Shown: positions 4,395 to 48,400 of the stretch, one piece after another
Layout of the letters: the number at the start of each line of letters is the position of its first letter
Position numbering within the stretch: position 1 is the first letter of the stretch
Assembly: GCA_050084985.1 (NCBI GenBank)
Contig: JBITNC010000002.1
Location: 23,560,001 to 23,624,000 of the forward strand
From: Nageia nagi
Taxonomy: Eukaryota; Plantae; Pinophyta
Direction of reading: 5' to 3'
Length of the DNA stretch: 64,000 nucleotides
Made by a program: the position numbers and the translations under genes
The notes under the pieces: generated by a model
What the model was told of the DNA's origin: nothing
Databases searched by the model: none
The model's input: only the letters and a program-made list of their open reading frames with translations

Positions 4395-5275
4395 ATAATC
4401 TTATTGTTAGGAATACAAATTTTGAGGTTTCACATTTAAGTGAATAGTAAGCTATTTGGTCATCTAACATCATTACATCATACTTTTGTTGAAATTTTAT
4501 TACTCTCAAGTTTAAAAGTTTTTTACCTATTTCATTGTAAAATATGTTTTGCATACATTAAAATATAAATAATATTTTTAGTATTATTTTTATTATAATT
4601 TTGAAATCTTTTTGATATATATATACATACATACTTCATTTTTTAATTTTCTTGAAATATAAATAAGTTTTTTATTCTAATTTTATTCATACTTTATAAA
4701 TATTTATAATATAATTTATATATATTTTAATGATTGCATTCAATGTAAAACTCTAATGTACAATTATTATTTTCTATGATAAAAACTTTATCTCTTAGTT
4801 AATGATTCAAATTTTATAATATAACATTTTTTCTATAGATAACACTAAAACAACATCTCATTTAAATATAAAATATGCCAAAATATCTCATTTGAACATA
4901 GAACATTGAAATCAAACTATTTATTAAGAATTACACTTATAAAAATAAATTTGACACCAAATGTATTTAAAATATTTAAGCTGATTTTGTGAACTCATAT
5001 AAATTTTATCCTCAAATTTTGATCATACAATTTCCAATTTTATCTTTTTAATGACAAGTATCATAAGACATAAGGTTAAATAAATCATAAACTCATGGCC
5101 CAATTTAATTTCTAATGATGTATGACGTTTGATTGCCTCTTCAAAAATAAATGAACATATAAATCATAAATCCCATCCTTAATAGTGTATTAAACTCACT
5201 TTTTTATAATTCAAATTATCATATATTATAACAATAATACACTTAATATACTCATCATAAAGTAATTTCCATACA

Positions 5276-7725
5276 TTTTTTTTATAATATTATAGGTGAT
5301 TTTTGAACGAAACCAATAAGATAATACAATTCTAGAATGATACAAAAACTTCTTAGTAACATATACAATGCATACTATGCCTATTGGCAACCTACCTACA
5401 AAAGGCCTTCCAAAGGTGTACACTATCCAATGCCCTTACAGGCCAAAAAAAAACATCAAAAACATAGGCATCACTTAAACATCTAACTCATTACATGCAA
5501 ATTGCTGAAGCTTTTCTACCTATGCAATGATACTATTTAGGCCTACCAGCAAAGCTCCACATAGCACTTCAATATCCTTTTGCAGGACACCCCTTCTCAC
5601 ATGAACCTTCTTCAGAGAACTTTGGATAGTAATCGAGGATGCCAGGGGAGTGGATTCTTTAAAGTACTCCAACTGCTCTTTCATCATGACTTTGGCTTTA
5701 TGCAACGAGTTGCATCTCCCTCCATCAGCCTCCTTCATCACCTTACGCTTATGATTTCCACTTGGTGTTCCAAAATTGACTCCCCTCCTCTCCTCCTTCT
5801 TCAGAGTTAGCCTAAAATTGTCTAAGTTCCCTATCCACCCTTGCTTCTTATCCATATGTTTGGCTACAACTAAGAAAAGTCCTTAGTGCAATACAAACTT
5901 GGTCCTACCTTTCTAGAAGTCTTTTGAAGCTTTTTCAATTCCTTAAATAGGAAATGTGGAACATTGACCCTCTTCTTCCACTACATATGATTCAAAATTA
6001 TGAGATGATCCCCTCTTACCCATGACATTTGGGTATCAAGTGTTATGTAATTCATGATGGTGCCTACCACTTTTGGCCATAGCTAAGGCAATCCCTCCCT
6101 TAGGATATACTTTCTATCCCACCCGATCTTCTCGCTTGACATGAAGAAATTCAGCTCAGTCTATAGGTGCTTGTCCTTTTGAATTTCAAACCTTCATCCG
6201 TCATTCTATATATCTCAGCCAGAATCATTGATGAAATTTTAAACATAAAGGAGCCTATAGTCACATAATCCTCCACCCAACTATTCGTTATCTAAAGCTC
6301 TAGTAACCAATATTTCTCAATATTTCTTGAACATCATCACTAACTAGGAGCTTCAACGATTCTAGGCATATGTCTTTGTGCCCCCATGAGAATCTCTTGC
6401 CTTGCCTTCCACCATTACCATCAAAGCCTTTTGCATATACTCTCTAAACCTCACTTCAGCTATTGACGATAACTCATACAACCCCAAAGTTCTTAAAAAC
6501 TGAAATCATGCTCTCCACTCTTCAGACATTCAATCTTTGCATAGGCATTAATCATAAACTGGATTAGCTTCCAACACGTTCCTCTTATTCATGTGAACCA
6601 TCTAAGGATATTATTTTCTAAGTACGCTCAAAACTATAATGTCGATATCGCACATGAAGCAAGATGGCTTGACACCTTCGTTCATGTTCTTCGATCACCT
6701 GCACTGGCATTGCGTCCCTGTAGTGATAAATCTCATTCACCGCCGATTGATTTTCAACACATTTCAACACCATTGTCTAAGGTCCGAGACACAAAAAAGT
6801 AGAAACTTCCAGAACTTAGCCATTGTTCCTTAGGTTTTGAACTTAAAGCAGTAGAGACATTTCCCACACCTGCTCCCATCCGCTAATTGGTTGGCGTCTC
6901 TGTAGATATGAGATATTGAAACAACATTCGTGTCCTTCACAATCCTTGTGATGTCTTCAATAAAAAAATTTAATAGTCTAAGTCAACCTTTGCAATCCAT
7001 TCAATAGCTCATCAATATTTTTAGAGTTCCCTTTAATCATTAAAGGAAAGAGATCCCACTCACAGTCTAGCAAAACACCTTAATGAACTGCCTTATCATG
7101 AGCGAACTGGCATGATTGATGACCAATTACCTCCAAACAAGCTACTAAAACTTCCCCATTGGCACCCCTCACTACTCCTCCAATTCAAGCCCTTCCCTGG
7201 GGATGGCTTTGACCCCCCACTTAGCAAGTATAGACACTTCTTCCGGAGACTCCCAGTCCCCTTTGAAATGGATTGCATTGAAATTAACCACGGATAAACA
7301 TACAATCCTATTCCATACCTCTAAACAAGTCTACTTCTTTTCCTTGAAGTTGGTGTATTTCTTTCGTTCCATAAACCCCAAAACACATGCGGTCTTACTT
7401 TTCAAGGGAGATTCCCATTGTAAGCAGAGATCAGCAATCGTCCTGTGTATAACCCATACACAATGAAAGGATTCAAACAAATTGGTCCATATTTCTTTAG
7501 CAAAAGAACACGCACAAAAAGATGGTTCTCGTCTTCCTCCTCTCTTTCGCATAAAGGGCATCTACTTGGAAAGGCAAAACCTCTTTTTCTCGGATTATTC
7601 TGAGTGAAGATTCTATTGTGCATGACAAGCCAACAAAACATATGGACTTTAGGAATAAGATGTATGATCCATACCTTCTTAGCCCAAACACTTCCCTTTG
7701 GTCAAGAAGATTCATACCCCGATCT
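5276..7725 (-). mobile_element. 5'-truncated L1-clade LINE (LINE-C): zf-RVT, partial RNase H, extra ORF3, 3' UTR, poly(A)
   Basis: zf-RVT FCWLVMHNRI...PSRCPLCEREEEDENHLF (7402-7641); RNase H C-terminal IKGNSKNI...SHIYRDANQLAD (about 6880-7040); poly(T) on + at 5276-5283; 15-bp TSD AGTAATTTCCA(T/C)ACA at 5261-5275 and 7726-7740. Confidence 0.9.
5520..6390 (-). pseudogene. Degenerate extra ORF (ORF3) of LINE-C, unknown function
   Basis: Translation across stops and frameshifts: NSWVEDYVTIG...REGLP*LWPKVVGTIMNYITLD...GDHLIILNH...VNVPHFL...H*GL, collinear with the ORF at 46830-48454. Confidence 0.7.
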
Positions 7726-8168
7726 AGTAATTTCCACACATTACCTTAATAGGTGAGAGTCATAATAAAATTTATATATTTCCATCATTAAAAATTACTA
7801 GTCCAAAATATTTCCTTGTGACTATTATGCTCTTTTATGTGGTTAAATCCGTTCCTCCTTCTCTTGTTGGTGAAAATGAAGTGTTGCTAAACAATTTCCT
7901 GCTTGCCTCTCTCACACAACGAAATGAAGTCTTGTTTCCCTTTTTAATCTTTGGCAGTGACCATGCAATCTTCTCCTGTGGCTAATCTCACAGACACTTC
8001 TTACATGACCCGCAAACATCTGTTCCACGCCTGTATTTCCTCCTAACGCTCCCAAACTGATTGGGTTTTTCCCACTCCACACACGCCTATCTCCCATCTG
8101 AAGAAAAAGATGAAGAAAAAATAGTACTTTGAAGTTGAAAAATTAGATTTAATATTGAAAACGTCAAT

Positions 8169-11699: not shown

Positions 11700-14600
11700 T
11701 CCTCCCCCTTGATGTTGATGGAACTTATTGATAGGCTTCTCAGCTTTAGAAATTGAGTTTTAACAACTCCTTTGGTGAACATATCTAGAATATTATCTAG
11801 GGTGTTGCAATATTTTTGTTTGATGATGTCCATCTCCACCATATCCTAGATGAAGTAATACTTCATGTCAAAGTATTTTGATCTTCTATGATGGACTGGA
11901 TTAAGTGCTAATTGGATGGCACTTTGGTTTTCATAAAATAAAATAGTAGAACCAATTTAATTCTCATTAAGTTCCTCTAGAACATTTCATAACCACAATG
12001 CTTGGGCACTAGCACTTATGATTGCAATATACTTCACTTTAGTAGATGGAAGAGCAATAATGATTTTCTTATTTGAACTCCATAAGATGAGTCCAAAACC
12101 AAGGCTAAAATAATGTTCGGATGTGGAATTTCTATAATTCAAGTTACTCCCCCAATTAGAGTTACTATAGCCACAAAGTTTTAGCTCGTCATGCTTGTAG
12201 TAGTGTAGGCAAAAGTCTAATGTGCCTTTGATGTATCCCATAATCCTCTTGCTTGCCTTCATATATTCTTCAGTAGGATCACTCATGTACCTAGACACAA
12301 GTGAAACAACATGAGCAATGTCTAGTCTAGTATTGGTAAGAAACATCAAACTCCCAACTAGCTTATAAACAAGGTTATATCAACCTTGGTTGTTCCATCA
12401 TCTATACATAATAGCTTTCCATGAGCTATTGGAGTGGGAAGCAATTTGCATTCATCCATACCATACTTCTTTCACATGTCATGAGCATATTTTGATTGAA
12501 AAAAAAAAATCTCACATTTTCTTTGAGTTAACTCCATGAGAAGGAAATAGTTCATCGGTACAAGATATTTCATCTTAAAGTATTGTATCATAGAGGCCTT
12601 GGAGTCATCATTCAATTTTTCACAATTTCCTATATAGATTAGATCACCAACATACAAGCACACAAGTAGGATTTTTTATCTTTCTTCATGATGTAGAGAG
12701 TGGCTCACTCTTGCTCATTATGAAACCATATTGATGGAAGTAACCATCAATCCTTGCATACCAAGCTCTTGAAGCTTTCTTGAGGCCATACAAGGCCTTC
12801 TTTAACTTATACATAAGATTTTCACTCCCTTCAACCTCAAATCCTTGAGGTTATTGCACATAGACCTCTTCTTCCAAATAGCCATTAAGGAATTCACTTT
12901 TGACATATATATGATTCACTAGCCAGCCATTGTAGGTAGCCATGGAAAGGACCAATCAGATTGTCTTTTGTCTTTCTATCAAAGAAAATGTTTCTACATA
13001 ATTGATGTCGTAGTGTTGGATAAAGCCATTTGGTACAATCCTTGCTTTGTGTCTCTCAATGCTTCCCTTAATATTGTATTTGATCTTATAGACCAATTTG
13101 TACCCAACATGGTTATTTCCTTTTGAAAGCTCCATAAGTTTCCAAGTATCATTTCTATTGATGGAAGAAATCTCTTTCTCCATAGCCTTCAACCATAAAT
13201 CATTAGTGCAAGCTTGATGATAATTAGATGGTTCAATCATTGTACTAGTTACCAAAGAATAGTTAACTAAATCATCTTTGGGTTCATAATTATCTTCATC
13301 ACCATACACATTTAAATTTTCAATCCTTTTTATAACTTGATCAAGTTCACTTGCTTGGCTCCTTGTCAATGTCCTTGAGAAATTTTGATCTAACATTTGG
13401 TTGGATGGGTGTGCTTGAAGTGTTCTTTTACCTTGATTTGCTTTTTATACCTTGGAAAGTGAAGATTTTTCTTTATTGGTGTGATCCAAAGGTTTCACTT
13501 TAGAGAAGTTATCTTCAATGGATTCATCATCATCAATTAGTTTTTTATGATCACATTCCCCCCTTGATCAAAACTGACATCTCTAAACACAACAAATTTA
13601 TCAATTTTTCGATTATATAATTTATATGACTTGGATTGCTCATAATAACCAATAAAAATACATGCTTGAATCTTAGGATCTAACGTTTTCCTATTTTTAT
13701 CAAAAATATGAGCATAAGCAAGACAACCAAAAAATCTAAATGCTTAGCAATAAATTTTTTCTCATACCATACCTCATAAGGTGTGATGCCATCCAAGTTT
13801 GAAGTTGGACTTCTATTCAATATGTACATGGTTATTCTTGCTGCATCAGCCCAATACATATTGCTTGAATTTTTTCTTTATAACATGCTCCTTTCCATCT
13901 CTACTATGGTTCAATTCTTCCTCTCCATTACACACTTTTATTATGGAGTATAGGAAGTTGTGAGTTGTCTCTTTATTTGATAATCCTTATAAAACTTGAG
14001 GAATTCATTGGAGCAAAATTCTCCTCCTCCATTAGTTCTTAAACACTTCACAATAGATTCAATTTACTTTTCCATATGAGTTTCAAAATTTTAAAATAGT
14101 CAAAGTTTGATCCTTGGAAATTAGAAAATAAATCCAACACATCCTTGTGTAATCATATATGAAAGTAAGAAAGTAGTAGTTCTTACCAATACTTTATGTT
14201 TGCATGGGACCATAAATATTGGAATGCACCAATTTGAGAGGATAGGAAGCTCTCCAAGCTTGGCCTCTTGGAAACTTCATTCATGAGTGCTTTCCTAAAG
14301 CACATCCTTCACACACTATCTTCTCTTCTTGAATATTGGGCAGCCCATGAACCATTTATTGAGATGTCAATAGTTTGAAACTTGGGTGGCTTAAATACTC
14401 ATATATCATATGCCAAAGCCAAATCTTGTTCTCCACAATTACATTTTCTAGTTGGATATAATCTTCTCCAAATTTGAGTGGAAATAATCTATTCTTGATC
14501 ATTAGGACTATAGTGACTAGCCTATGACCATTATTCTTATCATAGATCACATACTTTCCATCTTCAAAAATAAGCTTCTAGTTCTTCATAATTTGTTCCA

Positions 14601-23231: not shown

Positions 23232-26200
23232 CTCCCCCTCAAGTTGGTGTGTAGATATCTCTAACACCTAACTTGTCAAGTGAGTCATTGAATTTTCTGC
23301 TAGAAACTACCTTGGTAAGAATGTTAGCTAACTGATCTTTAGATTTAATAAAAGGGAACTGAATGATCTTCTCTTCTAGGTTCTATTTGATGAAATGTCT
23401 ATCTATCTCCATGTGCTTGGTGCAGTCATGTTGAATTGGGTTGTGAGATATGTTGATGGTAGCTTTATTATCATATAATAAATTCATTATAGAGTTAGGA
23501 GGAAAACTGACCTCTATTAGCAAACCTCTAAGCTAAAAAAGCTCACATAATCCTCTCACCATGCCTTAGAACTCAGCTTCAGCATTGGATAATGCTACCA
23601 CCTTCTACTTTTTACTCCTCCATGTAACTAAGTTTCCTCCCACAAATGTAAAGTGGCCTGAAGTAGACTTTCTATCCAAGATATTCCCATCCTAGTTTGC
23701 ATCCATGTAATTTAGATGAGCATTCTTGGAGAACATTAGTCCTTTTCTTGGTGATGACTTTAGATAGCAGAGAATTCAAATTACGGCACCCATATGGTCT
23801 TCACTCGGATTATGCATAAATTGGCTTACGCACTTATAGTGTAAGCAATGTCTGGATGAGTCTGAGATAAGTAAATGAGCTTCCCCACTAGTCTTTGATA
23901 CCTCACCTTATCGATTGGCACCTAGTCCGAATATTCTCCAAGCCTATGGTTCTACACAATCGATGTATCCACAGGTTTACACTTTAGTAATCCCACTTCT
24001 ATCAATAAGTCTAGTACATATTTTTGTTCAAAGAGGAATATGCCTTTTCTTGACCTCGCCACCTCTATTCCCAAAAAATACTTAAGCCCTCCCAAGTTCT
24101 TCATTTCAAATTCAGTAGACACTTATTCTCGTAGCATCAAGATCTCATCAGCATCATCCCCCGTAATTTTCATATCATCCACATAGACTATTAATGCTGT
24201 CACCTTGCTTTATTAGTGTTTTAGGAAGAGAGTATGGTTATATTTACTTTAGTGATAGCCATACTTCCTCATAGCTGAACTAAGTCGGCCAAACCATGCT
24301 CACGATGACTATTTTAGTCCATACAATGCCCTCTCCAATTTACAAACAATTTTGTTCCCAGCCAATCTTGTATGTCCTGGTGGAATATCCATGTATACCT
24401 CCTCATCAAGGTTACCATGAAGGAAAGCATTCTTCACATTGAGTTGATGTAGTGGCCAATCCAAATTTGCTGCAAGAGATAGTAAGACTCTAACAGTATT
24501 CAGTTTAGGTACTAGTGAGAAGGTTTCTGAGTAGTCTATGCCATACGTTTGGGTAAAACCCTTTACCATGAGTCTCACCTTATATCGATCAATTGATCCA
24601 TGAGCCTTGTATTTTATAGAGAACACCCATTTGCATCCCACTATTTATTTTCCTTTCGATAATGGGACCAACTTCCAGGTATTATTTTTCTTTAAGGCTT
24701 CTAGTTCTTCTTGCATTGCTTGTGCCCACTCTGGATTAGATAATGCCTCTTCAACACTACTGGGAATATGGAAAGAGGATAGTGTTTGAGTGAAAGTCTT
24801 GAATGGCTTGGACAGACCTTGAGTAGATACATAATTGGCAATTGGGTACTTGGACTTCCTTCCTTCTTCATCTAGGCTGTATCTGTTCGGTGGTTTCCCA
24901 CGATTGTGTCTAAAAGGCAACCCATAACTAGTAGGGGAATCCAAAATATTAGCATGTAAAGGAGTACTTACCTTAGGGACATTCTCAGGAGGAGGAGGGT
25001 CTTCAGGTACTAAGGAGTGAGGGAACTGAGGGTACTTTATATTTTCTACTTCTTCATTTTTAGCTTCTTCATTCCTCAAAATGACATCTTCATTTCTAGC
25101 TTCTTTAGCTTCTTCATTCCTCAATTAAACATATTCAATCTTTGGTGGTACCTCATGTGGTTCAACCTCTCTATTTCCTATTCCATGCTCACCCACGGGG
25201 GCCATCAACCAATTCATCTCTTCTACTTGAGTCTCCCCTTGAAGGGAAAAATTGGGTACCGATGAAGGATAGAAATTCTTGGACTCAAGAAATGTAACGT
25301 CCATGGTGATATAATTTCAATTGGTAGTGGGTTCATAGCACTAAAAGCCTTTTTTATGTAAACCATATCCCAAAAATAAGCACTGAATGACACATGGGTC
25401 CATTTTGGTATGCTGATTCTTATGGAGGTGGACAAAAGCAACACACCCAAAAATTCTAGGAGGAAGCATCAATATTGAAGGAAGGGGTATATGAGTAGAG
25501 AGGATTTGTAAGGGGGTTTTAAAGTGTAAAATTTTAGATGGCATATGGTTGATTAAGTACATGGCAGTAGCCATAGCATCCCCCCAATGGCAACTCAGCA
25601 CCATTGCTCCAAGGAGTAGGGCACGGGATGTTTCCAAAATATGCCAATTTTTCCTCTTGATGACACCATTTTGTTGTGGTGTGTGTGAGCATGAGTTCTC
25701 ATGGATGAGGCCATGTTGTTGGAAATAGGCTTGAAATCTTTGGTTGATGAATTCACCACCATTATCGGAATGAATAATTTTTATCTTGGAAGAGAATTGA
25801 GTCTGAACCATGGCATGAAATGCTTGAAATATGGTGAAAACTTCATCTTTGGTTTTTAGCTGATAGAGCCATGTCATTCGAGTACAATCTTTGAAAAAAA
25901 TTATAAACCAATGGTGACCAGAGGAAGTAGGTATTGGGGATGGTCCCCACACATTAGAGTGCATCAATGCAAATGGAGTAGTAGTTTTATTCAAGCTAAC
26001 TGGATAAGAAACTTGTTGGCTTTTAGCCTTGATACATGTATCACATTTAAAGTCCACATTCTACAAATGGAAAAATAAAGATAGGAGTAGATGCTGGAGA
26101 TAGCTAAATGATGGGTTCCCCAAGCACCTATGCCATAGCCAAATCTACCATTCATGGCTACTGGTTTGATGGTGCATGTGATTTGCTTTGCCTAGGTTGA

Positions 26201-27683
26201 AGTCATCAAGGTAGTATAGTCCCTCTCTCTTAGTACCATGCCCAATAATCTCCTTGCTGAGAACATCTTGAAGAAGACAAAAAGTAGAGTATATCAGCAC
26301 AACACAATTAAGCTCTTTAGTAACTTGAATCACATACATCAACTTGTTGGAGAGGGATGGAACAAGAAGTGTGTGAGCTAGAGAGAGAGAAGGAGATAGG
26401 GACACAGTTCTAGCCCCTGTGATTGGGTAAGTGGCCCCATTGGCATTGGCAATGAAATTCATTCATGTTTGAGTTGTGTTGTAGAAGTCATTTGGATCAA
26501 ATGTCATATGATCTATCACTCCAGACTCGATAATCCAAGCATCATTATTCTGAGTAGTAGAGCTGCAAAAAACTTGACCATAATTACCTTGATTTGGGGT
26601 TAAGGTAGAATGTTTAACTACAGGAATAAGAGAGAGTTGAGATCCAACCATGGCTACCACTACTCAACCTGGGACATCTTTAGTTGCAAGAGCATTTTGT
26701 TTCTTTTAGGCTTGTAATTCATGCCACCAGTCTAGGTAGCCATGTAATTTGAAATAGGTTTCCTGAGTGTGTTTTGTACTCCCATAGTGAGTGCATTTAT
26801 TCCCATCAGAATGACCTTTGCAGCATGAGGAGGACCCAAAATTATGTGACTAGCTAGATTTCATGCCTTTGATGGCCATAATAGCACCACTAGCCACTAC
26901 TTCTGCTCCCAATATAATCACATATTGTCAGAGATCTTCCCTTCGAACATGAGCATATGCCTGCTCAATTGAAGGGAAAGGTTTCAGGAAAAGAACATCA
27001 CTCCAAACATGATCCAATTGATCATATAGTCTATTAAAAAAAGTGTATACTCACTCCTGTAAAATGGAGTTGTAGCTTTGTATGTCAATTTCACATTTCA
27101 TTAGATTCAGTCGATAAAAATCGATCTCTCGCCACAATCCCTGTAGATCATTATAGTAATTTTCTATAGATCTTCCTACTTGCTTCATTCGAGATACATG
27201 ACATCTGAGCTCATATACCTGCGAGGTGTTAATTCCATCAAAGTATGTTGTGGTAGCAGAGTCCCATACCTGCTTAGCCATTGGTAGCGAATAAAGTTCA
27301 CGACCAAGGAATGGTCCATGGAGTTGATCAACCAGCCTTTCACCATGGCATTTTCAATGCACCACTTATGAAAGGAGGGGTTGGTTTTTGGTGGTTGGGG
27401 GTAGTCTCCATTGATGTATCCCAGTTTGTCTTTTCCTAAGATGTACATCTCAATAACTTGGGACCATAATCCATAGTTGGAACCATCCAACTTGATGTTG
27501 ATTGGAACCATCGGGGAATCAGTGATGGGAGAGGAAGAGATCTTGACCCTTGACAAAACCTCCATCATTTTTGATGTTAGACTATCAAGGATGTTTTTAG
27601 TGGAGTCAACCATGAAGGTCGAGCAAAATCTTGACCCCTGCCTGATCAAAAAATAGGGAACCCAAGATCATGCCATGATACCA

Positions 27684-32578: not shown

Positions 32579-35500
32579 TTCTCCCCCTTGATGCAAAGAG
32601 GACTCACCATGGAGTCTCTAAGCATCACATACTGAGCTTTGACAACACCTTTTATGAAAATATTAGCCAAGTTGATCTTGGTGTTGCAATAGTGAAGCTC
32701 AATTTGGTCCTTCTCCACCATGTCACGAATGAAGTGGTACTTGAGTTGGAAGTGCTTTGACCTACTGTGGTGGATGGGATTATGTGCCAACTAAATGGCA
32801 CTTTGGTTATCACAGTAAAGAATTGTTGGTCCATGTTATTTCTCACCAATTTCATCAAGTAGTTTCCTTAGCCATAAGGCTTGTGCACTAGCTACGGTGA
32901 GGGCTATATACTCAGCCTCACAATAAGAGAGAGCAACTGTAGATTGCTTCTTAGAACTCCATGTTATCATTCCTGAACCAAGTGAGAAACATTGCCCAGA
33001 AGTGGACTTCCTATCATCCAAATTGCTACCCCAATCACTGTCACTAAAACCAACAAGCTTAAACTTTTCAACATGAGAGTAGTGAAGACCATAACCAATG
33101 GTACCTTTAACATACCTCAAAATGCATTTTACAGCCTTCAAATGCAAAATAGAAGGATCATTCATGTATCTAGATACCAAAGAGATAGCAAATTGTATAT
33201 CAGGCCTAGTGTTGCAAAGGAACATAAGGCTGCCAACTATGCTTCTAAATTTTGTCACACTTGCTTTTGGAGCACCATCATCCTTACAAAGTAACTCACC
33301 ATGAGCTACAGGATTGTGAATAACAGTACAATTCATCATACCATACTTAGAAAGCATGTCCCTTGCATATTTACTTTGACAAACAAAAATCTCTTCTTAA
33401 CATTGGTGGACCTCCATGCCAAGAAAGTACCTCATAAGGCCCAAATCCTTCATTTCAAACTCATTCATCAAATCAGTCTTAAATTTGTTGTTCAAGATGG
33501 GATCACTTCCCATATATATCAAATCATCAACATAAAGAGAAACAAGCAAAGTCTGATTACCTTCTCTCTTGATGTAGAGTGTTGGCTCATTCTTGCTCCT
33601 CATGAGTCCAAAATTCTGAAAGTATCCATCTATGCGAGTGTACCAAGCTCTTGGAGCTTGCTTAAGACCATACAAGGCCTTCTTGAGCTTGTACACATGA
33701 TGTTCTTTTCCTTGCACTTGAAAACTTTGAGGCTGTTGTACAAAAACCTCTTCATCCAAGTAACCATTCAAGAATGCACTCTTCACATCCATGTGGTAAA
33801 CACTCCAATGGTTTTGGGTAGCCATTGAAAGAAGCAACCTTACTGTTTCTTGCCTTGCAACCGGTGCAAAAGTCTCTTCAAATTCTACACCATGTTTTTG
33901 TGTGAAGCCTTTAGCAACCAATCTTGCTTTGTGTCTCTCTATGGTACCATCACTGTTGTACTTGGTCTTGTAGACCCACTTGGAACCCACACACCTCTTT
34001 CCTTTGGGCAACTCACAAAGTTCCCAAGTGTCATTTTTGTTTATGGAGTGAAGCTCCTCTTGCATAGCCTTCACCCACATGTTTTTGGTGCAATCTTCCT
34101 CATAACAAGATGGATCAAAAATAGAAATATTAGTATTTGGGACTGCACACAAAGCATAGTTCACCATCTCACCCTTTGGATCCTCATCAAGTTCCATATT
34201 GCTAAATTGCTTAACAAACTTCTCCATTTCATGAAATTGACTTCTTGTTAATATTTGATGGAAATTTTGATCTAAAACTCGAGAAGGAGGATGGTTTTGA
34301 AAGTGTCTTTTACCTCTCTTGGTCTTCATCACTTCTTGGATCACTTTTGAAGAGCCACCACTTGAAGGTGAGCTTGGAGTGGATTTTGAGCTTTGAGATG
34401 GACTTGATGGAGGACTTGGAGGCACCACTTAGAGGTTTGGAAGAGAATTTGATCTCTTGGGCTGTACATTCTTTGCTTATGAAGTATCTTCATGGCTGGT
34501 CACTCCTCCTCCAATGTCTACAATGCATTTTTGCTGCTGTCCATACACTTTCCCCTCCTCAAAAATGACATCCTGGGAGACAAGTGTTTTCTTGGTTTTG
34601 GGGTTGTAAAGCCTATATGCTTTACTCTCATCACTGTATCCAATGAACACACATGGTTCACTCTTTGCATCCAACTTTTTTCTATGCTCCTTTGGCACAT
34701 GAGCATATGCCAAACACCCAAAAACTCTGAAATGCCGGACAGTAGGCTTCTTATCATACCAAGCCTCATAGGGGGTCTTGCCATCAATGGCACTAGTGGA
34801 ACACCTATTCAAGATGTAGTTTGCTATCTTTACCACTTCAGCCCAATACATGTAATGCAATTTTTTGGATTGCATCAAACATCTTGCCATCTCCATGAGA
34901 GTTCTATTCTTCCTCTCTGCCACACCATTTTGTTGAGGAGTATAGGCTGTAGTAAACTGTCTTTTGATGCCATTTTGCTTGAAAAACTTAGAAAAATCAG
35001 TAGAAGAATACTCTCCTCCTCTATCACTCCTCACACATTTAATCTTATGTTCACATTCATTCTCAACCATCTCTTTGAATTCTTTAAAAAACTCAAATGC
35101 TTCATCTTTATGCTTCAAAAAATAGACCCAACTCATTCTACTAAAATCATCAATGAAGGTGAGAAAATAAGAACTCATACCAAGACTTTTGTTTTGCATT
35201 GGTCCACATAAATCAGTATGAACCAACTATAGTGGGAATGAGGCCCTCCATGCTTTCCCATGATCAAATTTCTGCCTTGTTTGCTTGCCCAACACACAAC
35301 CTTCACAAACTGATTTTGGATTTTCAACAAGAGGTAAACCATGAACTAGCTCATGAGATAGTTTCAAACTACTGAAATTTACATGTCCAAATCTAAGATG
35401 CCATAACCAGGACTCATCTTTAACAGCCACATTTGCAAGAATATTATCCCCCTTTTCTCCAAGTTTCAATGGGAATAAACAATTTGGAGACATCTTAACA

Positions 35501-36689
35501 GTAGAAACTAACTTATGCCCATGGTTCTTATCAAAAATTTTACACTTACCCTCATCAAATACTAGCTTGTAGTTATTTTCCAACATCTACCCAATACTCA
35601 ACAAACTATGAGCCATATCCGGAGTGTGATACACATTGTGCATCTTCTTCATCCCATGCTTGGTAGGCACCTCAAGCATGCCTTTGCCAGCCACCTCAAT
35701 TGCAGAATTATTGCCAAGTTTGATACTTGACTTGTAGGAATGGTCCATGGATGAAAGTAGCTCCCCCTTACCGGTCATATGGTTTGAACATCCAGAGTCC
35801 AACAACCAAGTCTCCTCTTGTTTTGTTTTAGCCATATTGGCTGTCTCCTCCATGGAAAGAAAGAGAGTTTCACCATACTCTTCTTCCTCTCCAAAATTTG
35901 CCACTTTTCCATCACCATTTGCCGCTTGTTTTGCTCTACACTCCCTCTCATAATGCCCATACTTGTTGCAGTAGTAACATTGAGCATTCCTCTTGTCACC
36001 ATTGCTTCTACCTCTTCCTCTTATGCTGGAATAGCCTCCTCTTTACTGGATTGGACTGGTTCATCATCAACCATTTCTTCATGAGACATAAGGCAGCCAA
36101 TGAGAGAATCTATCTCCATTTGAGAGAGGTCTTTTGTCTCCATCAATATCACAGCAATGTGATGCCACTTCTTGGTAAGAGATCTCAGAATTTTTTTTAT
36201 TACAATGGCCTTCTCCAAGGTCTCTCCAAGAGTTAGCATTTTGTTCACAATCTCTTTCACTCTAACACAATAATCTGAAGCTTTTTCACTCTCCTTCATT
36301 TTTAAATTCTCAAATTCTGCCCTTAGAATCTGCAATTTTACCTCCTTCACTTGATCACTCCCTTGGAATCCTACCTTCAACACAGCCCAAGCCTCTTTGG
36401 CTATCTTGCAGCCTGCAATTCTTGGAAAAATGCTCCTATCAAGAGCTACTTGGAGATGAGACAAGGCAAGAGAGTTCTTGCTCCTACATTCCTTCATAGC
36501 TTTCTTATCTTCTACAGAAAGAGAGCTCCAATCTGCTGGCTCTACATAGCCATCATCAATAACATCCCACAAATCTTTGCCAATGAGCAAAGTTTGTATC
36601 TTGATGCTCCAATATCCATAGTCAATGCCATCAAACTCTGGAATGGGAATGGATGAGCTTGTGTTGCTGGCCATTATACCTGCAAACAA
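32530..36689 (-). pseudogene. Copia-4 gag-pol polyprotein (gag, CCHC, protease, GAG-pre-integrase, integrase, RT, RNase H) with several nonsense codons and one frameshift
   Basis: WLLDSGCSNHM; VHTDLCGP...SDRGGEY...QQNGVAERKNR; LYVDDL; FSDSDW...EAEY; collinear ORF fragments, frameshift near 36020. Confidence 0.95.
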
Positions 36690-39056: not shown

Positions 39057-42000
39057 TGACAAGTATTCTACTTTCATTTATTTGAAAAATAAAATCATTA
39101 CATATATAGGTTTTGGACAAAACCCAAAAATAAACTATGCTAAAGATAAAATCAAGCTGCATGATCACAAATTGTTACAATCTAATATAAAAAGATAACT
39201 ATATATAATTTTCTAATTATATTCTAACATGCTTAACAATAATTGGGTGAAACTAACACCTAAACCATAAATAACAACATCTAATCTAAACTAGAACACA
39301 AAAAAATGCAATCCCACACATGCTAAAAATAATCTTTTAGGCTCTATTTTTATCACATTCCATTTGGGGTGAGGCATATTGCATCTAGGATGAAGTTTTG
39401 AAGTGGACTATGCCTGGCATAAAGGATTGAGGTGCATTATGCTTGTGTGATGCATAGTAGACTATACATTTTATCATAAAATGCCAAATATGATGGTCAA
39501 ACCTTCAATAAAGGTAGGTATACATATACTCATTGAAAAGGTATCTTCAAGTGATATCAAATACAAAAAGAATCAACTCAATTGGATATTTGTATAAAAT
39601 GTTATGTATTCTCAAATTTGACTAATCTATTTTTGAGAGTCGAGTTGATTTTCAACTATTTTGATCTTCAAATCTAATGGTGTTTGATTGAGCTATAATT
39701 TCAACATTCTACCCCTTTATGCTAAAGGGGCTCTTAAAAAATTCTATTAGCATAAAAAACTTATAATAAACTTAATATTTCTTACTTCCTCTAATATTTC
39801 ATCAAGAGAGCCAAGAACACAAGAAATTCACATTGGCACTCTTTCCACATTTGGTGTGGGATCTCCTCCATCTCTGATGCTCCTCCTTCTTGTAGATAAT
39901 TGAGTGTATCCTTTTGATGAGTTACTCCCCTTCATCAAAAAATTCTTGTATTTGCATTCTAGCAATGCCAATGGTAATGGTTCTCAACAACCATTCTTGA
40001 TCATTGTTTCTCACATTTTTACATCTTTTTTCCCATGATATATTTTCAATAATTAACCATATCATATAAATAATTAAACCATACAACTCTCTCACATATC
40101 TCAACACATTCTTAGTTTTTAGCATTTGAGTCCAAGTGACCCAAGCTCTCATCCATTGTCTTCTCCCAAGGAAGAATCATTATAAATGGTATCTTCATGA
40201 GATAATCTTCAAGTGATACCTTGATAAGACATACACCACCTTCTTCTATTATAGTATCCTTAGATCTAGCCTTCAAACATCTACTCAATAGAAAATCATC
40301 AATATCATTAGTTAATAAATCAAATAAGAATAAATCATCACCTCTAATAATGCTTTGGTGACTAGTATCCCATGTTGCTTTTGAAGCAACCAATTCTTCA
40401 AACATAGTAAGGAACTCCCATGGTTCCTCTTTGTACAATGTTACCTCTTCAATATAACTCTTTGTTTTCACTCCAAGTGAGTGATATCCATACATAATTT
40501 CCTCTTCAAGATAATTCTCAATCTCCTTTTATGATACCTCAATTATACCACAAAGTCTATTAGTGACTATCTTATTATGTTCTACCTTCCCCTTGATATA
40601 GTCTTCCTCATACAAAATAGTCCTTACTCTTGATGAGTGATCTTCTTCTCCAATAATTGATGCCTTCATATTCATGAAAATTTGACATTCACCAACCTCA
40701 ATTATATATTCATTCTCTATCGCATTTGCTATTGTCAATTTCTCCTTCTAAATGAGATAGTGTCGTGCTATTTTCTTCGCACAATACATCCTTCACTCTT
40801 GATGAGTATGCTTCTATGTTGAGTATGAAACTCATAGTCTGCATTTCCTCTTCATCTATGAACTCTTTTGGATCATTATCCTATATTATTTCTCTTAAAA
40901 ATCATCATTCACTCTAGATGAGTGAGTTTTACAATATCAATCCACTCAATGTAAATGGTATTGAAGAAAAAAACACTCCATTATAAGTATTTCTCCTCCT
41001 CTTTCACTTTTCTTCCCCTTTAGAGGAACTCTAACATATGGGTAATCAACTCCCAAAACTTCATCTATTTCCTTTTTAACAAGATAATCTTTCACTCCAA
41101 ATGAGTGAGCTATCAAATGTAGTTTATCACAATATATCACTCCAAATGAATGATCTTCGACTTCATCTAAGTGGGCTACAACAAAAAGGAAACACTACTC
41201 TATGAGAAGTTGTTCTTCCAATTTTGGTGTGGACTTCCCCTCCATGAGACATGATTCATCAACAAAATTATGGTCTTGTCCCTCCTCCATGAGATATTCT
41301 TTAGCCACTTATCTTGGTGGTCTTCAACTTGTGCAAGCCAACATTTTTTTATAAAGCACTCTTCAACAAAGGGCTGAGATGATATCTCCTCCTCTATAAG
41401 CTGAAGGTGCATGTCTCTTAAATAAGACATTCATTCTCCCTATGGTTTGTGTGAATGTATTCAAAATATGTCATTCCCATTAGAGTTCATTCAATACACT
41501 TTTTATTTTCAACATATTCTCCCTCTAAAAGAAAGAATTCATCATCCATGCCTTCAACATAAGACTTACCTCCAAAAATAAGGGTTTCACAACAAGCTTC
41601 ACCTTATCCTCTCTTCTCTACAAGAAGTTCATCCACATGAATTTCATCTATGAGAGTTGCAAAAGGCCTCACACTAGGCTCTTTCACATCCTCCTCTTTA
41701 AGAAAGTATTCTCCATCACCATGCATGGATTCATAAGATATGGTTTCACATGATTCTACATAAGATTCTCCAAAATGGTAATTTGGTTTGAAACAAGGCT
41801 TCTCCTTTCTCAAATAATCTTCATGAGTATCCTCATCATACCCATAAGCATAGTGTACTCTCCTCCATGTAGTTGCAGTTGTTCCACAACTTGGAATAAG
41901 TGGGAAAACACCTTTTTTAATACCTTTTCTTAAATCCATGACAGTATAACAATTTTCATATTTCTCCTCTTTCTTCAACCTCTTCTCTTCTTTTCCATGT

Positions 42001-44228
42001 ATGCTCCATGTGAAGGGTTCTTCATAGTTTCCTTATACAATGCTTCCAAGATATTTGTCCATTAATAAAGTCTTTATTATTATACTCTAATAAGCATAGT
42101 CTTTATAATAAACTTTTTGGACCTATAGGCCCCCAAATATGGTGGCTATCCAATAATCTTCCATTCTGATGGAATCTTAACTAGAAGTAACTCATTCATA
42201 CTTACAAAAGGTTAGGTAGAGTGTTGTTGTTGGAATCCATTACATTCTCAAAAATTAAACAAAACTTTAGGCTCTCTTCATACACTTGCAATAAGTTTTA
42301 TTATTCTTTCAATACTCAAAAGCTTTCCTTTAACCCATTAGATCTCTCAACTAAGATCTTATACTACAATGAGAAGTAGTCTACTTTCATTGATTTGAAA
42401 AATGAAATCATTACATATATAGGTTTTGGAAAAAACCTAGAGCTAGAACATGCTAAATATAAACTCAATTTGTATGATCACAACTCTTTACAATCTAATC
42501 TAAAAGGCTAACTAGATGTTCTAATTATATCATAACATGCTAAACAACAACTAGACAAAACTAACATCTAAAATAGCAACATTTAATCTAAACTAAAGAT
42601 AAAAAAATGTAGTCCCACATATGCTAAAAATAGCCTATCAGGCTCTATTTTTTAGGTGCACTACATATGGGATGAGGTGCACTATATCTAGGATGAAGTT
42701 ATGAGGTGTATTGTACTTGGGGTGAGGCATAGTAGACTGGATAGCTTGTCATAAAACACCCAACATGATGGTCAAACCTTCGACAAAGGTAGGTATGTGT
42801 ATACTTGTTAGAAAGGTATCTTTGATAACTATCCAATTCTAAAAGAATAAACTCAATTTGATGTCTCTATAAAATGTATTTCTTCTCAAATTTTATTGAT
42901 GTATTTTTACAAATCTAGTTGATCTTCAACTTGAATGGTATTCGATTGAGGTCTAATTCGAATATTCTCCCACTAGATGTTGAAGGGACTCCTCTAGAAG
43001 TCTATAAACATCACAAACTTGGAAGAAAGTTAATATAAATAATTTCCTTCAATATTTCAACAAGAAATCAAAGAACATACAAAATTTGCATTAGTTTTCC
43101 TTTCATATTTAGTGTTGGATCTCCATCTCTAATGTTGCTACTTCTTGTAGATCACTAATTACCTCATTTGGATGACTTACTCCCCCTTCATCAAAAACTT
43201 CTTATATTGATATTTCATCAATGCTAATGGTAATGGTTCTCAACAACTATTCTTGCTGATCATTTCTTACATTTGTATACATTTATTCCCAAGTGATGTT
43301 TTTACAATAATTAACCATCTCATATAGATTATTATAGTATACAACACTCTCAGATATCTCAACACATTATTAGTTTTCATCATTTGAGTCTAAATGACCT
43401 AATATCTCCTCCATTGCCTTTTACCAAGGAATAATCTTTAGCAATCTTAGATCTATCATTCAAATATCTACTCAACAAATAATAATCAGTATCATTAGTT
43501 AATAAATCAAAGAATAATAAATCATCACCTCCAATGATGCTTTGTTGAGTAGGATCCCATGTTGCTTTTGAGGCAACCAATTCTTCAATCATAGTAAGGA
43601 AATCCTATGGTTCATCATTGCACAATGTTGCCTCTTCAAGAAAACTATTTGTTATCACTCCAAGTGAGTGATCTCCATCCACAATTGCCTCCTCAAGATA
43701 ATTCTCAATCTCCTTTAATGATGCCTCCATTATACCATGAAGTCCATCAATGACTATCTCACTATATTCTATCTCCCCCTTGAGATATTCTTCCTCATAC
43801 AAAATAGTCTTCACTCTTGATCGGTGATCTTTTTCTCCAATAATCGATTCCTTCATAGTCATGACAACTTGAAGTTCACCAACCTTGTTTATGTCTTCAT
43901 TCTCTATATTATTTGCTATTGCATATTTCTCTTTACAAATGAGATAGTGTCTTGTGCTCTTCTCTTCACACAGTACATACTTCACTCTTGATGAGTGAGC
44001 TTCTCCATTGAGGATGAAACTTATAATCTTTATCTCCTCTTCATCAATGATCTCTCTTGGATCATTATCCCATATTACTTTTCTAAGACAATCATCATTC
44101 ACTCTAGATGAGTGAGTTTTACAATATCCCTTCAACTAATATGAACTATCTTCAAGCAAAAAATACTTCATCATAATGGTTTCTCCTCCTCTTTCACTTT
44201 TCTCCCCTTTTAGAAGAACTCTAACATA
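39057..44228 (-). mobile_element. Tandem non-autonomous copia derivative (LTR-int-LTR-partial int; LARD/TR-GAG-like)
   Basis: LTRs 39057-39706 and 42370-42964 share the Copia-1 LTR terminus; PPT-like tracts at 39707 and 42965; decayed PBS at about 42355-42367; internal 39707-41040 duplicated at 42965-44228; gag N-terminal remnant near 42030-42140; no integrase or intact RT. Confidence 0.8.
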
Positions 44229-44857: not shown

Positions 44858-45429
44858 ATGTCTGAGAGCAGTAGCTATTGGCGTTCTGAGTCCAAACGAT
44901 CTGTTTATCTGAAGTCAAAAAAACCCACTGCTAATAAAATTCAAAGTGTTGATACTGATATCAAAAGTTTTTCTAGAAAAAGAAAGAAACCAAATTCCAA
45001 AAGAACAATCGGAGTTGCACAGACAACCACCTCCAAAAAGATAAAAAATGTTCTACCGGCAATGGAATCGATAGAGGAAACGGAAGAGCAAAAACTATTG
45101 AAATACCAAAACGCCAAAGCAATTTGTATCTCTACATTGAAGGAGTATAATTTAATTGGTTGTCATTCTAAAGGAGGTGCAGCTGCAGATTTTCCAGGGG
45201 TCATATGTGATGGTAGTATTCAGCAAAGATGCAAAGTATGTAATGAACTTGAGGATACACAGTCAGTGATATGTGATAGATGTGATGAAATATTTCATAT
45301 TCGTTGCTTACCATCTAAGTATAAACGCAAGAAAGTAGAAGATGCTGAGGATTTTTACTGTCCACATAACTGCAAGAACCCTGAAAATTTTGTGTTTGTC
45401 GGAACTCATCCTACAGGATATAGTTCAGA
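44858..45429 (+). CDS. PHD/CW gene coding exon 1 (basic NLS-like region + PHD finger)
   Basis: ATG 44858; donor GA/GTAAGT at 45430; upstream acceptor TTTTGCAG ending 44805 implies a 5' UTR intron. Confidence 0.9.
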
Positions 45430-48400
45430 GTAAGTGCAAATTGAACATCACATTAATTGTGTATACTGTTCGGGATAAGGAATAATAAAGAATTTTATTA
45501 GAAAAGTCTTTTTTTTTTTAAATTTTAAGATAGACTCTAACTGAATGTGGAACCAGGTATCAGGGAAGCGAAGGGATTCCTCTATCCTGGGAGGAGAAAC
45601 GTTGGGAGAAATTATCTTTGGAAGAAAACTTAAAAAATGTAAATTAAGATATCACGCAGTTTGGTAGAGGAATATGCACATTTAGTGAGTTTTGATATTA
45701 TGCTTCAATGAGGACTTCAACATGTGAACTATATTGAACAATAACATTGTGGATTGTAGAATATCTGGGATAAAAACTGGAAGCCTGCAACTTCTATAGC
45801 ACATGATGAGGAGGAAAACTGGCTTCGATGCCAGGCAATGCTGTATAAAAAAGGTGATACGCTTCCAGATGGGGAACTTGCAAAAAAAAACGAGCCTTGT
45901 GAAAAATGGCGCAGGTAATTCTGCCCTATTTTTAAAACATAATTGTAAAATTCAGGGTATATTTTGGTAGATACAAGCATTTGAGCTTATACATTAATAC
46001 TTGATTTGACAGAGCACCACTATCAGAAGTTCAAACAACTACATGGGATTGTTCTTGTGCGGTGGTGTGGGATCCACATCATGCAGATTGCTTAGTGCCA
46101 CAGGTAAGAAAAACATGGATATGCTACTTAATTTATTTTGATTTTCATTTAATTACAATTGTAATAAAAATTTAGCTGGATGATTCATGGCTGTGGGAGA
46201 CTAATAATGAGAAATATCATAATTGATACTCTTTGCTAGGCCAATCAATTTTACTTCTGATGTCCGATTTCTTATTATTAGTAGTTATTCTTCATGTATC
46301 AACCTAATCCAATTGATTATTTTTCCCTCTTGATGAAATTTCCAATGGATTATCTTGATTAAAATGAATCTTCATACCATTTTTATTTTGTTCTATTTTT
46401 TCCTTTTTAATTATTTAACCTATCTTTGTAGCAAAGTATATCAACTTCCACATGTGGAGTACTTTGGTCCTATATCTTATTTAATAAGTCAAATACTTCT
46501 TTTAGGCATATAGCTCTAAATGTAATAGTGGATATATGGTCAATGTGGTGATATTTTCCAAAAAAATAAACACAAAAAATATTAATATGCAAAAATAAAA
46601 ATGAAATTATATATACCCTTATATTATCAAAATGCAAGGTTTTAAATCGGATCTCAAAACCAGGTCACAAAATTAGTTTCTATGTATAGAAATCCCTACC
46701 TAGCTATACCTTGTGGTAGCCAAAAAGATACTTAGCTATCTCTGAAATATAACCAAAACTTAGCTAGATTACATACAAAACTAATGTCAAGCTACTAGAG
46801 ACTATAACATTAATACTATTCTATAGGTCTACTTGGCATAGGTCTTCTTAGCTTCTCCCTCACTAAGGCTGCTTTCTTCTACATCTTCTTTTCCTCTACT
46901 CTAGTCTAGACTTTGAACTGAAGAACTATGGAATTTGATTTAGGGACAAGCTGATCTGCTAGAACCCATGCCAGAGGTTTGATACTTAGAGGTTTAACCA
47001 TTTTCTCCTTTTTTGTCATTTTGTGAAAATCCTCTCCTACCCTTTTTTTAGGTAAAACATCCTCATTTTTGGGTAGATTTTCACTTGCACTCTTAGTGAG
47101 TGCAAGTTGAGCCTGAGCCAAGATAGGGGTTTCTTGAGGAGTTTCATCAAGGTGAGGAACTTGAGGCCAAATTATGAGTGGTGAATCATATTCCATATGA
47201 ACCTCTTCTACATCTAGATAACTCTAAGGAAAAGGGCTATCCTTCCCATCATCACCTTCCTCATTCACTTCTCCTTTACTTTTTACATCCTTTGTTTGTC
47301 CATCTAATGCCTCACCTTCCTAAATACCTTCGAGGATCTAGGAAGGGGGTTCCAAGATCTCCTAGGTAGTCTAATTTGATGAAGCTATTGGTCCTTCATA
47401 TGTAATTAAGGATGGGACCAAAATCCCAATCCCTTCTAGATAAGAGGGGGGATGATAATTTTCCTCAGCCTAAATTGATACCAAAGAAGGTACTTTGGGG
47501 GTACCATCATCCTAAATATTCATAATTTTAATCCCTTCATTGTTTACCTTGGCCTTCTTACCCTTGGATTTTTGGGATCAGGTTACCATTCTTCAGCTAC
47601 TCAAAGGGTTTGATGTTGAATTTTTCTTCAAGAGCCCTCCATACTTTTTGGGTGTTTTAGCTTTTTTAGCTCTTTTTCTCTTTTCTTCCCTAGATTCTAA
47701 TGTCATTCCTTCTTGGTTTTTGTTGGACTTGGAGGGTTTAAGATTCCACTCTACTACTCTTCTTCTTTTCCTTATCTAATTTTGTAGGTGAGTTCTTTTT
47801 AGAGGTTTCCTCTTAAATAGTTTGATCGAACTTAATTTTCATACCAAGGGTTTCTATTAATGCTTTTCTATACATAAAGGTAATGAGACCCAGATGTCCC
47901 ATTTGGAATTCCTCTATGTTTCTCACTTGTTGAATTGAGACCTTGATGGAATCCACCAGAAAGAAAGGAAAGCATACTTTGAATGCTTCACCCTTTCTAA
48001 AATGACATAATAAAATAATATTAGGGCCAAAAATAATAATATACCACCCATCCATCATGAAATACTTGGTTAACCACTTCATGAAATAGTTCCATGGTGC
48101 TGGGAGGCTCTCACAATCAATTCATATGCATTTCTTAGTGATGGGTTCCCTAGGAGCTAAGAAGGCTTGAATTTCTATAGGCTTTACTTTGGAATTATGC
48201 TTAAACATCCTACCATCCAATCTTAGAGAATTATCTTTGGCAATGGTACTTAATGTTTAGTTGACCCTCACCATTCCAATTACTACCCATCTATTATCAA
48301 CACTATTAACCACTAAATATTTTAGATCCAGTTCATGGTCCTAATATTTCTTGAGGTATTGTTGCATTCCTCCATTTGTTAATATGTCCCATACCTCCCT

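Follow-up and report, generated by a model that had tools for sequence, protein, structure and literature searches.

A candidate third open reading frame downstream of ORF2 in two decayed L1-type retrotransposons of the conifer Nageia nagi

Descriptions of long interspersed nuclear elements (LINEs) give them two genes, and additional open reading frames (ORFs) are a familiar theme only in long terminal repeat (LTR) retrotransposons and some DNA transposons. A stretch of 64,000 nucleotides (nt) from Nageia nagi (GenBank assembly GCA_050084985.1, contig JBITNC010000002.1, positions 23,560,001 to 23,624,000 of the forward strand; referred to here as the window) raises the question of whether plant LINEs of the L1 clade may carry a third gene as well. 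A first-pass annotation of this DNA had noticed a degenerate ORF behind the ORF2 remnant of a LINE on the minus strand ("LINE 1") and had proposed that it represents a stable cargo gene, ORF3, rather than a one-off passenger. Our analysis of LINE 1 and of a second, diverged LINE in the window ("LINE 2") leads us to believe that ORF3 is probably a family-typical third gene of these L1 lineages, carried in the LINE genomic RNA 3' of ORF2. It is best described as an accessory module common to several retroelement classes, not as a gene of LINEs only. The recurrence on which the proposal was based holds at the second LINE; one family member, in addition, lies next to a Ty3/gypsy integrase.

The stretch from 7725 to 5276 on the minus strand is a single insertion between 15-nt direct repeats (Table 1), and it is best explained as an ancient, no longer active retrocopy of an L1-clade LINE with a truncated 5' end. 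In this AT-rich window (G+C, 33%), 15-mers at offsets of 1.5 to 4 kb match at 14 or more positions at a chance rate of 4.5e-6 per pair, and approximately 0.016 chance repeat pairs are expected when each end is left free to slide by 30 nt. The run of eight A residues that abuts the 3' repeat is the sole A-run of six or more in the 2,450-nt element. Together, this run and the target-site duplication (TSD) are what is expected of target-primed reverse transcription. Because there is one TSD-bounded insertion with one terminal A-run, ORF3 must have been copied in one RNA with the 3' end of the LINE ORF2. This agrees with the first-pass annotation, which had taken the extra ORF to be retrotransposed within the LINE RNA and had placed the 15-bp TSDs, and the 3' untranslated region (UTR) and poly(A) that precede the 3' copy, where we find them. 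An identical 8-mer, TCACCTAT (minus strand), occurs just beyond both 15-nt repeats, at 7756-7749 and 5299-5292. Given this flanking 8-mer, the TSD may measure as much as about 31 nt, its middle part being rich in indels; alternatively, the 8-mer may reflect microhomology of the LINE 3' end with the target. With the longer or the 15-nt TSD, the extra ORF lies inside the duplication either way.

The element start at 7725 falls inside ORF2, and the endonuclease and the reverse transcriptase (RT) core are missing from LINE 1 because the copy begins there. What is left of ORF2 had been read as zf-RVT followed by RNase H. The zf-RVT part of this reading is clear, and the domain is similar to that of LINE 2 by tblastx. 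The RNase H, in contrast, is detectable as a weak C-terminal remnant only: the piece at 6833-6982 (minus strand) matches positions 88-117 of the 123 positions of RVT_3 with an E value of 0.0028 and 18 bits, under the gathering cutoff of 21.6 bits, and the upstream RNase H motifs, which lie in shifted frames, were read by eye in pieces without a Pfam match. The spacer between ORF2 and ORF3, put at about 450 bp initially, is slightly shorter and contains neither a Pfam match nor a match to the ORF3 family.

Table 1. Features of the window, with LINE 1 and LINE 2 first and neighboring features last (position 1 is the first letter of the window).
Feature	Position	Strand	Remarks
LINE 1, TSD 5' copy	7726-7740	-	tgtgtggaaattact; 14/15 positions identical to 5261-5275
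LINE 1, zf-RVT, C-terminal part of L1-type ORF2	7405-7701	-	Pfam PF13966, E 1.7e-16, 61 bits (cutoff, 27.5)
LINE 1, decayed RNase H (RVT_3-type)	6833-7330	-	Several frames; C-terminal part detectable only
LINE 1, spacer ORF2-ORF3	6870-6444	-	427 nt (6444-6832 outside the RNase H remnant); longest A-run 4 or less
LINE 1, ORF3 remnant	5520-6443	-	About 920 nt, about 300 codons; several stops, frame changed 3 times or more
LINE 1, ORF3 N-domain	~6443-5873	-	By family homology
LINE 1, ORF3 open tail	5882-5523	-	120 codons, then stop 5522-5520
LINE 1, 3' UTR	5284-5519	-	Between ORF3 stop and A-run
LINE 1, A8 tail	5276-5283	-	Abuts 3' repeat
LINE 1, TSD 3' copy	5261-5275	-	tgtatggaaattact
LINE 2, decayed L1-type ORF2	48798-52462	-	Endonuclease to zf-RVT by Pfam; RT motifs read by eye
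ORF3b	46909-48487	-	Behind LINE 2; same family as LINE 1 ORF3, different deep subfamily
Ty1/copia element, fairly well preserved	32836-36689	-	Retrotran_gag_2, E 1e-29; rve and SH3_retrovirus, E 5e-34; RVT_2, E 5e-74
Decayed copia remnants	11987-13396; 24309-27649; 52958-56497		
Collinear direct repeats	39057-41038 and 42370-44228		Spacing 3.19-3.31 kb, 73-87% identity
ORF with PHD finger	44858-45430	+	191 codons; PF00628, E 2e-6; flanked by LINE 2 and the direct repeats at 39-44 kb

The ORF3 remnant of LINE 1 is degenerate, as had been noted, and somewhat larger than the 870 bp or so first assigned to it. A hidden Markov model (HMM) of the family core, built from outside proteins only, matches at 6082-5984 (E 4e-7) and at 5980-5873 (E 0.004); these pieces follow each other collinearly along the model and share one frame, with a single stop between them. 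An HMM of the N-terminal half matches at 6291-6154 (E 0.016), and tblastn with the proteins of Taxus and Ginkgo described below covers 6291-5891 at an E value of about 1e-11 and roughly 40% identity. In the core alignment, in which the single in-frame stop of LINE 1 was written as X and the frame was otherwise left unrepaired, the conserved W, KY.TL, H..LL.H, and VN.P.FL positions are retained, and a degenerate counterpart of the MGGQLKR start of the Taxus proteins is readable at the beginning of the ORF. This homology shows the extra ORF to be the remnant of a true gene and not an ORF that arose by chance. None of its stop-free pieces matches a Pfam family, and a protein homologue search and the family profiles gave no relatives for the 120-codon tail. 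Likewise, a profile of the C-terminal helices of the Taxus proteins, run against the window, matches neither LINE.

LINE 1 and LINE 2 are the two LINE ORF2 remnants that tblastx with the LINE 2 ORF2 recovers in the window, and the 3' ends of both are followed by a member of the ORF3 family in the same orientation at a spacing of 340 to 430 nt. In LINE 2, Exo_endo_phos is weakly matched at 51974-52087 (E 0.0017) and zf-RVT is found in two halves (49191-49289, E 8e-4; 49005-49187, E 4e-6); its RT motifs were read by eye only. The second ORF3 copy, ORF3b, starts about 340 nt downstream of this ORF2 on the same strand. It is matched by the core HMM at 48121-47816 (E 2e-33), by the N-half HMM at 48487-48344 (E 7e-5), and by Taxus proteins in tblastn at 48541-47708 (E about 1e-22). 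The homologue that had been claimed at the same position of a second LINE is thus confirmed by profile and by tblastn. Direct blastn and tblastx comparison of the LINE 1 tail with the LINE 2 tail finds nothing significant, and the homology between ORF3 and ORF3b is detectable only via profiles or third-party proteins. Like ORF3 of LINE 1, ORF3b has a frame broken by frameshifts and stops, and its stop-free pieces match no Pfam family.

Some further observations were made around LINE 2. Right behind its zf-RVT, at 48720-48790 (minus strand), lies WWMIEGAFKWKDD, which resembles the beginning of the RNase H of plant L1 elements (W..P..G..K.N.DG). Only about 340 nt are left before ORF3b, and a deletion may have removed the greater part of an RNase H from LINE 2. 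A match of 16 out of 20 positions between 46109 and 52952 was considered as a TSD of LINE 2 and rejected, since the flanks share nothing by blastn or tblastx. A weak match of the core HMM at 58682-58882 (plus strand; E 0.05) was dropped for want of tblastn support.

The family to which the two copies belong was found by a phmmer search with the 102-residue piece at 47816-48121 (minus strand) against 1.84 billion representative proteins. The search gave 19 matches, the named ones being from Ginkgo biloba and Taxus chinensis, and a profile made of these matches extended the set to 31 protein clusters, nearly all of them "hypothetical proteins" of Taxus chinensis with intact ORFs of 340 to 510 residues. 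The family therefore has multiple copies in Taxus chinensis and also occurs in Ginkgo. A profile search with a non-Taxus alignment returned only its own query members, and Pfam recognizes no domain in 39 family members, with no match to the plant mobile domain (PMD), Transposase_32, or ATHILA up to an E value of 10; the pieces from the window likewise match none of these models. Intact Taxus members share a conserved Met start, MGGQLKR, and are made up of an N-domain of about 180 residues with the motif SLPxPW..KYxTLEGxY..H..LL.H...VN.PFFL..SL, a disordered linker that is Ser/Arg-rich and acidic, and a helical bundle of about 70 residues at the C terminus. Pairs among 16 Taxus paralogues are on average 84% identical over the N-domain, compared with 63% over the linker and 71% over the C-terminal helices. 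Such unevenness would be the pattern expected under protein-level constraint, bearing in mind that it is not a ratio of nonsynonymous to synonymous substitution and that gene models are preselected for open frames.

Three features of these gene models may be mentioned in passing. In the Taxus sequences P0020 to P0031 of our alignment A3, the MGGQLKR start puts Gly at position 2 and, by analogy with retroviral Gag, could be a start of the N-myristoylation type. In the longer Taxus gene models, the Met of MGGQLKR is preceded by a conserved in-frame leader, part of which aligns to 48541-48455, ahead of ORF3b. Finally, the Ginkgo biloba protein Gb_10421 (P0004; 593 amino acids) contains two tandem ORF3 N-domains, at about 16-165 and 284-471, and may represent two adjacent element tails merged by gene prediction.

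As for the structure of the protein, residues 1-200 of a Taxus member fall near PF20167 Transposase_32 clusters in the ESM Atlas (feature score, 0.90; template modeling [TM] score, 0.70), near a PF03078 Athila ORF1 cluster (TM, 0.79), and near a cluster with some PF10536 PMD members (TM, 0.71). The 102-residue LINE 2 piece gave no usable match there. An AlphaFold model has a low mean predicted local distance difference test score of 53.5, with values of 70 to 85 in the core. Foldseek against the PDB and a PDB sequence profile search found nothing, and VIA-align against the PDB matched the C-terminal helical hairpin alone, which is uninformative. We take the prediction as a lead that the ORF3 N-domain may have the fold of the Transposase_32/Athila-ORF1/PMD group.

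We infer that these L1 elements regularly include ORF3, because it recurs at a second LINE, because there is no internal A-tract, and because the family is multi-copy. Under the mechanism that we propose, the LINE genomic RNA would consist of ORF2 (with zf-RVT and RNase H), a spacer of about 430 nt, the separate ORF3, and a tail. For the copy in the window, one RNA was the template from which target-primed reverse transcription made the whole unit, ORF3 included. If LINEs of this kind are often strongly truncated at the 5' end, many stand-alone copies of ORF3 without RT would result, and these may be what has been annotated as genes in Taxus. ORF3 would be translated independently, from a polycistronic or subgenomic RNA, and the module would be exchanged between LINEs and Ty3/gypsy elements. 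The weakest step is a guess at function, namely, that the ORF3 protein might be an accessory factor acting on the element ribonucleoprotein or on chromatin, in targeting or in countering silencing. It is possible, and we put this forward more tentatively, that whole L1 lineages, probably of gymnosperms, are tricistronic, with an ORF3 of PMD/Transposase_32-like fold that aids the element (e.g., by chromatin targeting or escape from silencing) and that has been passed between the LINE and Ty3/gypsy classes.

The exchange between element classes is suggested by one family member, P0018, which is found on two metagenome contigs that are 99.9% identical (L001 and L002); a comparison of P0018 with viral contigs gave nothing. 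The ORF3-like region of L002 (3186-3893, plus strand) matches a core HMM built without P0018 at an E value of 2.6e-7, which is the level reached by LINE 1. This region is preceded on its own strand, at a distance of about 1.3 kb, by a Ty3/gypsy-type integrase (L002, 146-1869), with Integrase_H2C2 above its gathering score (E 3e-6), rve (E 0.02), SH3_Tf2-1 (E 0.23), and, by eye, a GPY/F-like "WLGPYEI" motif. There is no LINE signature between integrase and ORF. The L002 member resembles the 3' additional ORFs that LTR retrotransposons carry and agrees with the published case of Athila in sunflower (PMC11728184), the unity of a single element on this 6-kb contig being putative, and because it follows a gypsy integrase, the ORF3 module is not LINE specific. 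On the opposite strand of the same contig, at 5698-5973, a chromodomain-like integrase tail of another element can be read by eye. In a maximum-likelihood tree of the core, with long branches and only about 100 columns, P0001 is the nearest partner of LINE 2 (support, 97/92), the gypsy-context P0018 joins them next (91/72), and LINE 1 is placed among the Taxus and Ginkgo group (84/83), to which its core is 37 to 39% identical.

How, then, may a third ORF have come to lie behind these LINEs if it were not their own? The most skeptical answer, that a long 3' UTR of the LINE happens to contain an open stretch, could draw on the many stops and frameshifts, the tail without relatives, and the lack of Pfam matches, but it is hardly credible in view of profile and tblastn matches to proteins of Taxus, Ginkgo, and other sources that stay in register with the conserved residues. 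A one-off passenger would be a more serious candidate. In mammalian L1 3' transductions and chimeric retrocopies, non-LINE cargo lies between the LINE body and the poly(A) within one TSD. Likewise, a source LINE upstream of an ORF3-bearing gene or LTR-element ORF may have been read through, or a template switch from a polyadenylated ORF3 transcript may have occurred, giving a single chimeric retrocopy. Such an origin would fit the occurrence of the family outside LINEs, both behind the L002 integrase and in the RT-less Taxus gene models, and also the fact that LINE 1 ORF3 is nearest to the Taxus/Ginkgo type whereas that of LINE 2 belongs to another subfamily. Yet LINE 1 has neither the internal A-tract nor the second TSD expected from classical 3' transduction of a retrotransposed source, and the same cargo follows in the same order, orientation, and spacing at the only other LINE of the window, diverged as it is, which makes a one-off event unlikely.

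The remaining alternative is that ORF3 primarily belongs to another element, as the 3' extra ORF of an LTR retrotransposon or as a nonautonomous retroposon, and that the LINE-ORF3 units arose by recombination or by nested insertion followed by decay of the inner borders. The arrangement in L002 speaks for this, as do the Athila and gypsy proteins that are the nearest annotated structural relatives (ESM Atlas; PMC11728184) and the copia element that LINE 2 directly abuts. On the other hand, the TSD-bounded LINE 1 unit contains no LTR, integrase, gag, inner duplication, or inner tail, order and spacing are alike in both LINEs, and the assignment of the L002 integrase and ORF to one element is itself putative. 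We consider this origin distinctly unlikely. The first-pass annotation had named as a refutation the finding that most homologues lie within LTR elements or DNA transposons; what we see is one member near a gypsy integrase, together with remote structural relatives that are proteins of LTR retrotransposons or of Mutator-like elements (MULEs).

Several observations weigh against our preferred reading of ORF3 as a family-typical gene of these L1 lineages. The ORF3 cores of LINE 1 and LINE 2 share no more than 23% identity and do not group together in any bootstrap tree, and this separate placement would fit independent captures as well as ancient divergence. Both ORF3 copies are broken, and no LINE with intact ORF2 and ORF3 exists in the window. 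LINE 2 has no recognizable TSD or tail, so that its unity with ORF3b is drawn from adjacency alone. No ORF3 gene model of Taxus or Ginkgo contains an RT domain, and one family member, that of L002, has a Ty3/gypsy-type integrase upstream. The fold assignment stays a lead because it comes from one tool and has no Pfam sequence match behind it. Finally, a search of sequencing runs for the LINE 1 stretch returned one air metagenome with small parts of it and no RNA run.

This air metagenome contains near-identical fragments of the LINE 1 locus and several copies of the ORF3 core at 80 to 90% identity, with fewer of ORF2. The excess on the ORF3 core over ORF2 is suggestive only, and no ORF2-ORF3 junctions were seen in the short contigs of this sample. 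Two of its contigs, of 163 and 170 nt, correspond to 6001-6163 and 6974-7143 with one mismatch each. DNA of this or a very close species was airborne in the sample, probably as pollen.

How does this arrangement compare with known systems? Reviews of plant L1 elements list ORF1 (DUF4283, zf-CCHC or RRM) and ORF2 (RVT_1 with or without RVT_3), with no mention of a sense ORF3 in PMC5203782, in agreement with the canonical two-ORF structure that the first-pass annotation had taken as established, and our literature search did not find a sense ORF3 reported for any LINE of plants. For plant L1-clade LINEs with RNase H, ORF2p is given as RVT_1 plus RVT_3 (Smyshlyaev et al. 2013, as summarized in PMC5203782). 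LINE 1 resembles these elements in having a zf-RVT followed by an RVT_3-type remnant at the 3' end of ORF2, a short A-tail, a TSD, and 5' truncation, but it differs from the plant L1s described in PMC5203782 by the separate ORF of about 300 to 500 codons between ORF2 and the tail.

Closer parallels to the extra ORF itself exist in other element classes. Additional ORFs (aORFs) are established for plant LTR retrotransposons (PMC7264820, PMC11728184), and the 3' aORF of sunflower Athila bears a Transposase_32 (PF20167) domain (PMC11728184). ORF3 is similar to the Ty3/gypsy aORFs in being an accessory ORF downstream of the polymerase gene, in having an N-domain that is predicted to be near PF20167 and PF03078, and in having one member behind a gypsy integrase, whereas its carrier in the window is a non-LTR element and it has no Pfam match. 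PMD (PF10536) has been reported in gypsy and MULE elements as well as in host genes, but not in LINEs (PMC5418596); the host proteins include MAIN and MAIL1 (PMC5418596, PMC7156037). With PMD, ORF3 would share the occurrence of a domain in several transposon classes and host genes alike, the structural similarity given by the TM score above, and, in our own reading, a pattern of the "GLP..GE" style in the N-half. There is no match at the sequence level, and a silencing-related role of ORF3 would be speculation. In bdelloid rotifers, ORF3 modules are common to LTR, non-LTR, and Penelope-like elements (PMC5408684). This is reminiscent of the situation described here, in that one accessory ORF type on different retroelement classes points to modular exchange, although the rotifer modules are from animals and encode a GDSL esterase or a DEDDy exonuclease, whereas the present domain is from a plant host and looks nonenzymatic.

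The LINE 1 locus itself is only a fossil; it is of value because, as a linked pair of examples, it and LINE 2 define both the family and where the family lies. If ORF3 is indeed a conserved third gene in plant L1, this would imply a new accessory function in LINE biology, the more so if it belongs to the PMD fold group, and a plant example of module sharing among retroelement classes. It would also account for unannotated multi-copy "genes" in gymnosperm annotations: if whole L1 lineages are tricistronic, the "hypothetical proteins" of Taxus and Ginkgo would be 5'-truncated LINE tails. Conceivably, ORF3 would then be a candidate for how a LINE copes with silencing in very large genomes.

Of the neighboring features (Table 1), the collinear direct repeats upstream of the PHD-finger ORF are a tandem duplication or an LTR pair, and the PHD-finger ORF may be either a host gene exon or a transposon-borne domain.

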